Shown: positions 11,506 to 46,600 of the stretch, one piece after another
Position numbering within the stretch: position 1 is the stretch's first letter
Layout: the number at the start of each line of letters is the position of its first letter
DNA from: Auanema rhodensis
Taxonomy: Eukaryota; Animalia; Nematoda
Direction of reading: 5' to 3'
Length of the DNA: 64,000 nucleotides
Assembly: GCA_964057225.1 (NCBI GenBank)
Contig: OZ059898.1
Location: forward strand, 5,952,001 to 6,016,000
Program-made: the position numbers and the translations under genes
Notes under the pieces: generated by a model
What the model was told of the DNA's origin: nothing
Database searches by the model: none
Seen by the model: the letters and a program-made list of their open reading frames with translations, nothing else

Positions 11506-13541
11506 ATGGAAGAGGAAATCACCGCTCTCGTCATTGACAATGGATCCGGCATGTGCAAAGTCAGTTGTGTTTTCTATTACTTTAAACAAAGAACTTTATA
11601 GTTATAAAGTTTAATCAATTATTTTAAAATTGTTCTATTCAATATGAATCTAAATTCAGGCCGGATTCGCCGGAGACGATGCTCCACGTGCCGTCTTCCC
11701 ATCCATCGTAGGACGTCCTCGCCATACCGGAGTCATGGTTGGAATGGGACAAAAGGATTCCTATGTTGGAGACGAAGCTCAATCCAAGAGAGGTATTCTC
11801 ACCCTCAAGTACCCAATTGAGCACGGAATTGTCACCAACTGGGATGATATGGAGAAGATCTGGCATCATACCTTCTACAATGAGCTCCGTGTTGCTCCAG
11901 AAGACCACCCAGTCCTCCTCACTGAGGCTCCCCTCAACCCCAAAATTAACCGTGAAAAGATGACCCAAATCATGTTCGAGACCTTCAACACTCCCGCCAT
12001 GTATGTTAACATCCAAGCCGTCCTTTCCCTCTACGCTTCCGGACGTACCACCGGTATTGTCCTTGATACCGGAGATGGTGTCACTCACACCGTCCCAATC
12101 TATGAGGTTTGTTATCGTTTCTTGTTGTTTTTCACTATTGCAATGTTGTATCACAATGATTTATCATGTATTTTGCAGGGTTATGCTCTTCCTCATGCTA
12201 TCCAACGTCTCGATCTTGCTGGACGTGATTTGACTGATAACATGATGAAGATCCTTACCGAGAGAGGATACACCTTCACCACCACCGGTAATAACTATAA
12301 TTTTGATACCCATGTCGTATTCAAATTAATTTTAATTTCTTTTTTCATTATACGACTAGTATACTCAGTCCTTATCACAGCTTTAATATGTAGGAAACTG
12401 ATCTTTTCTCTTTACGTATTAATTATAGTGAGAAGCAGGAGATAATTAAAACACAAAATTGTAGAAACAAATAGAGAAAGAGAGTAGGGAGAAGAGATAG
12501 GCAAGCAATTGCAGACATTCTAAAAGGGTCTTTATATATTTTTACAATTCTATAGATAGTACATAGAGAATTCTATCTTATCTATTAATTGAGACTTTAT
12601 TCTTAGAATGGCTTACCTCATTATCATTATATCAAAATTCATGTTTGAACTATCAAACGATTTCTCTATCAATCTTTTCCGTTCTCTCACCTTTCACAAT
12701 CTTCTCTCTCTATCCTTCTCTCTTTCAACAATGTATCATTCTTGTTTCTCTTACATTCTTTTAATATCAAGAAATACCGATTAATCATTCTTGTATTATT
12801 CTTCATAAGCTAAAAAGAATAGAATCAAGAAATATCTTGATCGAATTAGCCAATAATTTCAAGTTTTACATTGATGTTATTACAGCTGAACGTGAAATCG
12901 TTCGTGACATCAAGGAGAAGCTCTGCTATGTTGCTCTTGACTTCGAGCAAGAACTAGGAACTGCCGCTAACTCTTCTTCCCTTGAGAAGAGCTACGAACT
13001 TCCCGACGGACAGGCTAGAAATTGATAGCCATACAAGTGTTAATACTAATGTGTTATAGGTTATCACCATCGGTAATGAACGCTTCCGTTGCCCAGAAGT
13101 TCTCTTCCAACCAGCCTTCATCGGAATGGAAGGAGCTGGAATCCACGAGACCACCTACCAATCCATCATGAAGTGCGATGTTGATATCAGAAAGGATCTC
13201 TACGCTAACACCGTTCTCTCCGGAGGTACCTCTATGTTCCCAGGAATCGCTGACCGTATGCAGAAGGAAATTCAACATTTGGCTCCAGCGTAAGTTTTAC
13301 TTTAATTTTTGGATAAACGTTGTTCACAGCAAACAACATCGATAACGGTTAGAACGTTTTGTAATGAATACCCTGTTTCAGTACCATGAAGATCAAGATT
13401 ATTGCTCCACCTGAGCGTAAGTACTCCGTATGGATCGGAGGATCCATTCTTGCTTCCCTCTCCACTTTCCAACAAATGTGGATCTCCAAGCAAGAATACG
13501 ACGAAGCTGGACCAATGATTGTACACCGCAAGTGCTTCTAA
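11506..13541 (+). CDS. act-5: Actin, intestinal (ACT-5 type), 6 exons
   Basis: [40 protein letters not shown]...IVHRKCF*. The acidic MEEE N-terminus and QKEIQHLAP are ACT-5 features. TTTTAG acceptor lies just before the ATG. Confidence 0.92.
13014..13059 (+). other. GC-AG intron in act-5 (46 nt, CAG|gctaga)
   Basis: Needed to give the invariant actin sequence ELPDGQ|VITIG; read-through hits a stop. Confidence 0.9.
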
Positions 13542-14434
13542 AAATTTATTTCTTTTTATTAAATATCTTGTTCTTATTATGTACAGATATTATAAATCAT
13601 GTTATAGGTATAAGATCACCTATTTAAAAAATTTGAAAATTATATAAATATTATAAACCATACTTTTATTCACTGTATGAACAATATGATTTTAAAAAAA
13701 TGAATAGAAAGTTTGATTTAATATAAAACTAGAAAGATAGTTGGAATGAATCTGATAAGAGTTTCATTTAAACAACTAAAAAGATCACGAACTTCTCTTT
13801 TTCCTTTCATTTTAAACAGACTTGTTTGACGATGTTCTTTCAAAATGTTTGCAACATATGAAAGCAAAAGAATAGACAGAAAGTTTCAACAGTTCAAAGC
13901 TTCACACATTTTCCTTTTCATTTCTATCAATGCTATAAAAATCTTATAGAATATTCTGTATTATGTGATTATGTAATAAAACAAAAAAAAGTTTCAAATT
14001 ATTCAAATTTATATCAAAGACAAATAAAACAATTACGGCTACAAATACAGGCACAGCGAAAGACACCAAGTATCAATATGAACTTGGTATTATATTCGAG
14101 ATCGTTAGAAAACTTTTACAAGCAAAGTACAATAAGTTCCCGCTTCTGAACTACCGAAGCTACTACCCAAACTTCTTGACTATATATCAGAAAAGAAAAA
14201 ATGGAGCAAAATTTTTAAAAACCGGAAAAAGGTTCCCGGCTGTGGAAAACCACGTGAAAAAGAAAGTGAAGTCGGATATATGCAGACATACGATGTCAAA
14301 TATCGGATAATCATGAAATTTTTTTTTTAAAAATGAGATTCATAGATTATCTAATTAGAAAAGTATGAAAGATTATATCCACCGGTAGAATTGGTAACTA
14401 TATATACAACAAGAAACATGCATTACATAGATGT

Positions 14435-43617: not shown

Positions 43618-46600
43618 ATGACGGACGAGGACTGGCCGTCTCAGAAATTCAGGGATCATGTGATTAATAGGCTGTAAGTTTTTTTTCAGTGATAATTCGG
43701 GTTCCTAACTGATTTAACGGTTTCAGTGAGCCGGAATTGCAAAGAAATCGTCAAAACGCTCCCAATCTTCCCGTTCCTGGAGATGCTCGACAAGTTGAGG
43801 AATACGTGTTCCAAAAATGCGTAACTAAGGATGAATATATGAGAACTATAGCTAAGGTTGCAACATTAGGCATTAATACAACTTCAACTTAACTTCATTA
43901 TAGGTTATTAATGCTATTAACTGCAATTCTAAATCAGCTGCTGTACCTCCTGTATTGCAACCTTCTTCTTTTCATAGCCCTCCATGTTCTACTCCTTCTA
44001 GTGTTAACAGTGGTTCAACTGCGTCTAGCTATAGAACCACTGTTCCTCCAGATCCACAACCAACACAAGTTAGTTCTAGGCTTTATATTTAAACATGTTC
44101 TGTTAGCTTATAAGTTATCAATCCCAAACCCAAATTTTGATATCAAATTCAAAGCTGCATTTAACATTTTTGAATTGTTTTGATATTTATATGTTCGTTA
44201 CCAGGCTCGTAATCAGCAGCAATCGCAACAAGCTCAGCAACAGCATGCTCAAGTACCTGCTTCCATTTCGAGCAATGGTTCTCTTCCACCACAGTCCCAA
44301 CTTTCTCCTGTTTTCTCAACTCCAGACAATGTACCGTATCAACCCCCTATGGGTCAACCTCCACCACAAATGCAGCCTAACTCCCAACAGGTTCACTTTT
44401 GCTTCATGATATAATTAACTTTTTGAACTTCCTTCTTTTATAAATTATAAAGCATGTTGTAATACTTACTTCTAGTTTTTATAACTTCAGGGCCCTATGC
44501 AAGGAGCTAATGGCTATGGGCAGTACAACATGATGCCGCCTCAAGGACAAATGGGTCAATATGATAATCGTATGCTAAAACAACCCAAACAAGTAAGCCT
44601 ACCTATGATCTAAATTATTTTGAAATGTTTTAAAGGAGCCTATTTCTCGTGGTTGGGAAGGGCAGTCTCATCCGTACACTGCTCCACCTAATCAATGGAA
44701 TCAAGGACCATATCCTCCTCTACCTCAACCACCTCAGAGCCACGTTCCCCAGCCAGGTGCTGGAAATCAGGGATCTGTTCTAGAATCTCTAATAAATCAG
44801 CAGCAATTTCCGCCTCAGAGCCAAATAAATGCCAGAACTGTTATGGGTCCTAATGTTGAGTTAATATCCGGAGCACCTGCTAGTATGATAGATGAGCCTA
44901 TGCTAACTCCAGAAGATAAAGCTACTTATAATAACAAACTTGCCCAGCTTCGTCCCTATTGTGATCATATAAGGTTCGATAAAACTTCTTATATTCTATC
45001 TAGATTTTTGTGTCACACAACTTTTCTTGTCGTAATGTTCGTATTTTCTTGCAGGTCTCGAGCTCAACAATGTCGAGTACAAGGAAACAAAGAAGCCGCT
45101 GGAAAATTGGAAACAATGTTGGGTGTTCTAGAAGGAAGAAGAATTGTCAGTCTTGGATATTTGGAGAATTTAGAGAATTGGATTTACAGAAAAGTTGAAA
45201 TGCTGGTTTGAACTTATATGCTTGTTTCCCTTTTATATATTCTATTCCAGCAGGTACCTCAAGGAATGCGCCCTATGCCTCCAAATGGTCATCATCAACC
45301 CTCTCAAAATATGATGATGGGTATGAATGCCCCTGGTGCTGCTCACCCTGTAAGCTATTTCTTCTCATTTATACATAAATTGTAATTTTCAGATTCAACA
45401 TGCTCCTCCTGGTCATGGCTATCCACCCAACATGCCCTCATATATGGGACCACCTCAAGGAATGTGGAATGCACCCCATTTACCTCCTGGTGGAATTATG
45501 ATTCCTCCAGGTGCTCAAATGCCACAACAAGGGGTTCCAGGTCCTATGCATTCAAACTATAACAGAGAGATGGTCGAACACCACCGCCCTTATCCTCCTG
45601 TATCTACTATGAGAAACGTATATATGACTTCATCCTGCAAAAAATATATCAGTAATTTCAGATGAGAAATCAGCATATGATGCGTATGATTAATCCTAAC
45701 GGCCATGTCGGCCATGTGGATAACCTGCCTCCTACAGGTTCAGATGCTCTGAGGATACCTAATTCTACTGCTATGGAACAGCATATGAATACACCTCCTC
45801 CCCCGAATAGCGGAAATATGAATAGTTAGTTAAGGATAATCGATGATTTTTTATATCAATCTAATAGGTTTTGACATTCCCCCTAGTATTGTACATGGTA
45901 GACCTGGCTATCACCCGAATGGAAATGTTGCTTCAGAACATTCCAATGTTGATGATCTCTATAACGTGGAAGATATTCTACCTACACCATTGGAAGCAAT
46001 GAATAACCAACAACCATATCATCAGAATATGACTAATCAAAGTGGTACAGAAGTGCGGAATTTGGTATAATTTTTTAAAATTGATTATTTTTCATAGTAA
46101 TATACTTCAGAATTGTGGATTAAATGAAGCTGCCCGACGTGAAATGGGTTCTTTGGCCGACAGATTCGAGTTTGACAGTGAAGCCAGAGAGAAAAATTGC
46201 GTCCTTGTCAAGTGCAAAATGAGTGCGTGTTTAACGTTGCCTTTGCAGTGAAATCATTCAAACATTTTTTAGGATCTAGTCATGTTCCACAACTACGTCT
46301 TTTAGTTCCTTCTACTTATCCTAACGGGTCAATAACAACCGATAGAGCTGCATTAGATCTAGGTATGTAATATCAGTGATATTGAGGAGAATTATATTTT
46401 TAGATGCGTACTTGTATGATGATCTTCAAAATTTCATTCATGAGCGGTTAGGGCGTGGGGATTTACAGAGTATCACTGATTATTTGAATACTTGGGCAAG
46501 TTTAAATTTAAATTACCATAATATTAGCATTACTATTTTAGGAGACAACTGTTCGTGCTTATTATAACAACCAAAACCCATCCAATATTCCTGTGAATGG

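Follow-up and report, generated by a model that had tools for sequence, protein, structure and literature searches.

How freely may an intron begin with GC, and what would permit it to do so? The question is raised by a stretch of 64,000 nucleotides (nt) from the nematode Auanema rhodensis (contig OZ059898.1 of assembly GCA_964057225.1, positions 5,952,001 to 6,016,000), which is referred to below, at its full length, as the window. A preliminary description of this DNA had identified eight short introns that begin with GC and end with AG (GC-AG introns) in six conserved genes, and had proposed either that recognition of the 5' splice site was altered in this lineage or that short introns were defined mainly by their length and 3' signals. 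By reading the sequence directly, we found all eight donor dinucleotides at the positions that had been given (Table 1). Introns starting with GC account for approximately 1 in 10 here, roughly 10 times the usual animal rate; this is a known kind of oddity and not a new splicing system.

GC-AG introns and the support for each junction

All eight introns start with GC, end with AG, span 42-51 nt and carry an acceptor of the TTTYAG type. None of them resembles a U12-type donor (/RTATCCTT, where the slash marks the exon-intron boundary here and below); all resemble AG/GYAAGT, with G at position -1 in seven and G at +5 in six. The window has a G+C content of 33% and a modal intron length of 42-47 nt, in agreement with the published values for A. 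rhodensis of 32.2% G+C and a median intron of 47 nt (PMC6469403).

The frequency of GC introns was determined in two sets. Among seven curated genes, 8 of 79 introns began with GC (10.1%; exact 95% confidence interval [CI] 4.5-19%), and when the remaining predicted genes of the window were included the share was 8 of approximately 99 (8.1%; CI 3.6-15%), a total that bears out the denominator of roughly 100 in the preliminary description. The binomial probability of eight or more GC introns was about 1e-6 at a rate of 1% and 0.006-0.02 at a rate of 3.5%. When all 16 donor dinucleotides were offered at equal penalty as a control, GC was used seven times among short introns and every other non-GT dinucleotide at most four times, and GC is among the rarest dinucleotides of this GC-poor window. 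The eight introns are distributed over six genes and 33 kilobases (kb).

The junctions were evaluated by using a Viterbi gene parser that scored codons by log-odds, splice sites by donor and acceptor matrices, and intron length by an explicit term, and that was retrained once on trusted genes; this single retraining replaced an unrestrained self-training, which had led to runaway over-splicing. Owing to the weak donor consensus, counting consensus donors by regular expressions gave no information; counts of bridged open reading frames (ORFs) were too permissive, and the alignment of exons to a single homologue was too poor to serve as a profile. Applied to the tyrosinase orthologue of Auanema sp. 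JU1783, the parser reproduced the annotated span and the length of 650 amino acids, which provides an independent check on its performance. With a GC prior of 1%, it still selected all eight GC donors.

The claim that GC donors are needed to rebuild conserved proteins held for four of the eight introns, namely those of actin, cct-6 (two) and ddx-23, in which homology fixes the junction. The exons flanking the actin intron correspond to residues 205-246 and 247-322 of the same actin chains in PDB with no gap between them, the spliced actin model of 375 amino acids is 97.1% identical end to end to the actin of Auanema sp. JU1783, and destroying the donor cost the parse 18-19 nats. At cct-6 30126, no GT alternative preserves both reading frames, and the junction before ITVDRATL is consistent with the aligned CCT-zeta homologues. 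At cct-6 31522, the conserved GIWDN forms the exact start of the downstream exon, and GT alternatives would remove the conserved GLDV.TG. The ddx-23 junction EPEVQK/VLEFLPVSN is unbroken in strongylid and Caenorhabditis DDX23, including the proteins of Cylicostephanus and C. japonica, and in many further DDX23 sequences.

Three further introns are probably genuine GC introns, judging by the frames that they preserve, their lengths and the strength of their signals. The intron at 25899 in the AUP1-like gene bridges two open frames, and its best GT alternative would remove nine codons and create a 71-nt intron with a poor donor; destroying the GC donor cost 7-9 nats. At 26896 in the THAP-type, lin-36-like gene, a stop codon lies 7 nt past the donor if the intron is left unspliced, the three frame-keeping GT alternatives are all poor, and loss of the donor cost 4-6 nats. 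The mdt-15 intron at 46496 has no GT alternative at all and cost 3-5 nats, and its unspliced frame stays open for 69 nt downstream before a stop, which would allow a read-through. The eighth intron, at 27694 in the lin-36-like gene, is equivocal: it belongs to the best parse, and a GT donor 9 nt upstream, giving a 57-nt intron, likewise keeps the frame.

Sequencing reads were compared with the window through their short words. For the interval 25850-31650, four presumed RNA runs contained 0.48-0.49 of the words sampled; the exon models predict 0.47 and unspliced genes 0.85, and these shares provide indirect support for the exon models. For DNA runs of three studies, the Logan contigs contained 0.94-0.99 of the sampled 31-mers in a stretch with five of the GC sites. 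By our own arithmetic, five wrong bases there would drop about 2.7% of the words.

Table 1. Positions in the window of the GC-AG introns and of three gene models; a slash separates exon from intron.
Feature	Positions	Strand	Length (nt)	Phase	Boundaries	Remarks
GC-AG intron, actin gene	13014..13059	+	46	0	CAG/GCTAGA...TTATAG/G	
GC-AG intron, AUP1-like gene (probable)	25856..25899	-	44	2	ATG/GCTAGT...TTTTTTAG/G	
GC-AG intron, THAP-type zinc-finger gene (probable)	26852..26896	-	45		TAG/GCATGA...CTTTCAG/A	lin-36 of the preliminary description
Candidate GC-AG intron, THAP-type/lin-36-like gene	27647..27694	-	48	1	AAG/GCATGG...GTTTTAG/G	Equivocal; weakest of the eight
GC-AG intron, cct-6 intron 4 of 12	30126..30167	+	42	0	AAT/GCAAGT...ATTTTAG/A	
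GC-AG intron, cct-6 intron 12 of 12	31522..31564	+	43	0	GAG/GCAACA...TTATTCAG/G	
GC-AG intron, ddx-23 intron 11 of 16	34088..34138	+	51	0	AAG/GCATAT...GTATTTAG/G	
GC-AG intron, mdt-15 intron 14 of 15 (probable)	46496..46541	+	46	0	TGG/GCAAGT...TATTTTAG/G	
cct-6 (CCT zeta) model	29571..31708	+				13 exons, 539 amino acids, 12 introns (2 GC); full-length alignment to CCT-zeta representatives
ddx-23 model	32029..41017	+				17 exons, 766 amino acids; last exon 40818-41017 beyond a 5.9-kb intron
Tyrosinase/ShK gene	14438..16871	-				10 introns, all GT; comparator in the window

The same intron positions in relatives and GC donors in other lineages

The window is syntenic with a locus of Auanema sp. 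JU1783, in which a PBP-like gene, actin, and a tyrosinase/ShK gene on the opposite strand are found with exon identities of 70-88%. The comparison of the same intron positions in relatives, which had been suggested at the outset, recovered introns at the codon boundaries of four of the eight sites, and these always began with GT. The actin intron of Auanema sp. JU1783 lies in the same place by alignment, with the donor CAA/GTATAT, so that at the only site comparable with a congener the GC state is not shared (0 of 1). Both cct-6 introns occur at the same boundaries in a contig of a more distant nematode (L001), with the donors GAG/GTTAGG and GCT/GTAAGT. At the ddx-23 site, the genomic ORF of at least five relatives (P0001, P0016, P0066, P0072 and P0078) enters the intron with valine (GTN), whereas that of the window does so with alanine (GCA). 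Because the relatives carry GT at the shared boundaries, the GC state is derived: the introns are old, and a T-to-C change occurred in the lineage of the window. At the level of sequence, the excess of GC-AG introns in the window is confirmed as real and derived, and it would add a new lineage to a known phenomenon, at a locally higher rate.

Intron presence also varies between the window and this close relative. Two introns of Auanema sp. JU1783 are absent from the window, one in actin after ..SKR (L002, 10234-10277) and one in tyrosinase between ..STSANE and PIFFMHH (14129-14176).

The usual rates assumed in the preliminary description agree with published values, namely 0.6% of introns in C. 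elegans (PMC5906903) and approximately 3.5% in cyst nematodes (PMC4901422). C. elegans shares with the window the intron type, the short-intron architecture and the TTTYAG acceptor, and the rate in the window is about 15 times higher. In the cyst nematodes, GC/AG introns make up 3.46% in Globodera rostochiensis and 3.53% in G. pallida, and 2.36% in Rotylenchulus (PMC4901422). As in the window, the GC donors of cyst nematodes are U2-type, occur at several times the usual rate, share their flanking consensus with GT donors and are missed by standard gene predictors. Cyst nematode GC introns also tend to lie toward the 3' part of genes; the mean relative position in the window was 0.66, which was not significant. 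However, cyst nematodes are plant-parasitic tylenchids, whereas Auanema is a free-living rhabditine of a different suborder, and the rate in the window is about 2-3 times higher. Approximately 30% of the GC introns of Globodera are common to sister species, whereas the single orthologous intron compared in Auanema was GT in the congener.

A closer parallel in number is provided by Heterorhabditis bacteriophora, whose first gene set contained 8.87% GC-AG introns and whose BRAKER1 re-annotation contained 0.79%, the first share being taken as a warning of poor annotation (PMC5906903). Heterorhabditis resembles Auanema in being a rhabditine with a GC-poor genome, and the two GC-AG percentages are nearly identical. 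However, the Heterorhabditis figure came from unvalidated models that included many orphan genes, whereas the genes that carry the GC introns of Auanema are conserved and homology fixes four of the junctions. The synteny described above also shows that the window does not derive from Heterorhabditis, which had been considered as its source. We speculate that the Heterorhabditis figure may be partly real. Another instance of an animal lineage with a common non-GT donor is that of Eurytemora affinis and Oikopleura dioica, in which the donors are GA-AG rather than GC-AG and a U1 small nuclear RNA (snRNA) variant has been proposed as the cause (PMC7072748).

In the searchable literature on introns and splicing in Auanema, we found no report of GC-AG introns. 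In the searchable text of the A. rhodensis genome papers, the word "splice" is absent from the 2019 paper (PMC6469403) and "GC-AG" is absent from a 2026 preprint, which presents a new assembly of 180.9 Mb and spells the species A. rhodense.

Probable tolerance of weak donors and competing explanations

The signals surrounding the GC donors were compared with those of GT introns. The donor flanks of GC introns scored higher (mean 2.40 versus 1.46; p = 0.014), as did their acceptors (2.98 versus 1.95; p = 0.02). GC and GT donors favored the same bases at -1, +3, +4 and +5, the GC donors scoring somewhat higher. Compensation by stronger flanks and acceptors is the classic signature of a weakened donor. 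The better flanks and acceptors of the GC introns therefore point to ordinary U2-type splicing in which weak donors are tolerated, and not to a rewritten code. The proposed excess held within the window, well above 1%; altered recognition by snRNAs, put forward as a possible cause, is mildly disfavored given this pattern. The alternative offered in the same description, in which short introns are delimited mainly by their length and 3' signals, is in better agreement with the data, since all eight introns fall in the 42-51-nt class and carry strong TTTYAG acceptors. A whole-window Rfam scan revealed no snRNA genes in the window.

On the basis of these findings, we consider it probable (approximately 0.7) that the eight introns belong to the ordinary U2 type and occupy old, conserved positions, that T at +2 has changed to C in them, and that C at +2 is nearly neutral in this lineage. 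Very short introns with a mode of 42-47 nt and a strong TTTYAG may tolerate a single weakened position in the pairing to U1 or U6 if the site is otherwise good, and T-to-C changes at +2 would then drift to fixation rather than being purged. Within introns, C represents 22.5% of C plus T; relative to this neutral expectation, the odds ratio at +2 is 0.39 for a GC share of 10% and 0.02 for a share of 0.6% such as that of C. elegans. By this measure, population-scaled selection against C at +2 would have about one-quarter of its strength in C. elegans. Such weaker selection could reflect either a small effective population, as this worm inbreeds and has three sexes, or a spliceosome of greater tolerance. 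We infer near-neutrality at +2, a role for drift and an extension of the rate to the whole genome.

Several points weigh against this interpretation. The rate is based on one 64-kb window. The parser found no GC donors among approximately 27 introns of the Auanema sp. JU1783 locus, a result with a probability of 0.06-0.10 at a rate of 8-10%, and this gives a weak hint that the GC excess arose more recently, or is distributed less evenly, than a trait of the whole genus would be. Homology fixes 4 of the 8 junctions and the other four rest on frame continuity, and loss of the donor at 27694 costs the parse just 0.3-2 nats. The fourfold difference in selection is a back-of-envelope estimate.

A change in the splicing machinery itself, whether in the U1 or U6 snRNA or in the proteins PRP-8, U1C or SNRP-27, would make U and C at +2 indistinguishable and place GC donors on a par with GT. 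This would account for the high GC rate and for the six of eight GC donors that deviate from the full GCAAGT consensus. We nevertheless consider it unlikely, because better flanks and acceptors are not expected if C at +2 is free of cost, and because free interchange of T and C would predict a GC share of 22.5% instead of the lower 10% observed.

It appears equally improbable that the GC-AG introns are real and the genome-wide rate ordinary (2% or less), so that the window would represent a chance or regional excess. The reliance on a single window and the absence of GC introns from the sister-species locus would agree with a local cluster, as would the neighboring PBP-like, tyrosinase and ML-domain-like genes of the window, which contain none. 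However, eight or more such introns among 79-99 would be expected with a probability of about 1e-6 at a rate of 1%, and the eight are spread across six genes and 33 kb.

The possibility that most of the GC introns were mis-parsed, so that a nearby GT is used or no intron exists, as in a read-through of mdt-15, was judged very unlikely. The restriction of homology support to half of the junctions, the frame-keeping GT near 27694, the 69 nt of open frame in mdt-15 and a ninth GC candidate at 25298 that lost to a GT donor 15 nt away are compatible with such an artefact. However, four junctions are fixed by homology to the residue, with introns of relatives at the same boundaries, and GT alternatives remove conserved residues or yield introns of atypical length. 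Moreover, dropping all four introns without homology would still leave 4 of 75 (5%). An assembly or base-calling error in which the true +2 base is T is scarcely credible, since it would require eight independent T-to-C errors exactly at the second intron base and since the 31-mers of the stretch with five sites are nearly all present in the runs of three studies.

A broader reading would hold that GC-AG introns reach at least 8% genome-wide in Auanema rhodense, the highest validated share in nematodes, that the lineage has lost discrimination between U and C at +2 and that the terminal-dinucleotide rule is generally relaxed for very short introns; we regard it as possible but doubtful.

Gene models, neighboring features and implications

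Several of the gene models have features of their own. In ddx-23, motif VI (HRIGRTGRAG) was reconstituted only across the long intron, which extends from 34885 to 40817 on the plus strand and splits HRIGRT/GRAGKSG; at 5.9 kb, it contrasts with the 42-50 nt of most introns in the genome. Where an RS-like domain is expected, the N-terminal region of DDX23 is a long repeat made up almost entirely of Arg-Asp (RD; 32375-32697, plus strand). Because of this repeat, the opposite strand and other frames stay open as well, and the first parse was misled by it. The mdt-15 model of 749 amino acids was identified as Med15 by a KIX domain (E=8.5e-10), with a weak Med15_C match just upstream. Protein-collection searches with open segments of ddx-23 and actin returned no protein from this organism, and a search of representatives with a cct-6 exon returned only distant or fragmentary ones.

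Individual exons of the AUP1-like and lin-36-like genes matched no Pfam domain, and a metagenome scan revealed no relatives of the AUP1-like gene, whose name is that of the preliminary description. The AUP1-like gene also contains the ninth GC candidate (25235-25298, minus strand), which was rejected because a GT donor 15 nt downstream, giving a 49-nt intron, outscored it. The two form tandem donors, AGC/GCAAGT for a 64-nt intron and AAG/GTTTTC for the 49-nt intron; both are in frame, differ by five codons and could constitute an alternative 5' splice site, with the GT donor scoring better. Adjoining this gene, a small gene of about 150-190 amino acids in four to five exons was predicted at 23860-24473 on the minus strand. 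A search with its largest exon (23945-24232) identified no relative in a collection of 5.8 billion proteins; six candidates shared words with it and none scored.

Long microsatellites of the (GA/TC)n and (TA/TG)n types are located at 21300-21610 and 63500-63760 and near 9700, 27320, 47100 and 51100, and they generate spurious open frames on both strands.

The published annotation of A. rhodensis contains 123,693 introns in 11,570 genes, or about 10.7 per gene (PMC6469403). If 8-10% of donors were GC throughout the genome, 59-68% of genes would contain at least one GC-AG intron. Both published gene sets of this species were produced with Augustus- and BRAKER-based pipelines. Such programs predict GC-AG introns reluctantly or only with hints, and truncated or split gene models are therefore to be expected. 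The finding also provides a reason for re-examining the dismissed GC-AG figure of 8.9% in Heterorhabditis. A lineage that carries GC where its relatives keep GT constitutes a natural experiment on the strength of selection at the second intron base, and it may reveal whether that selection is limited by drift or by an altered machinery.

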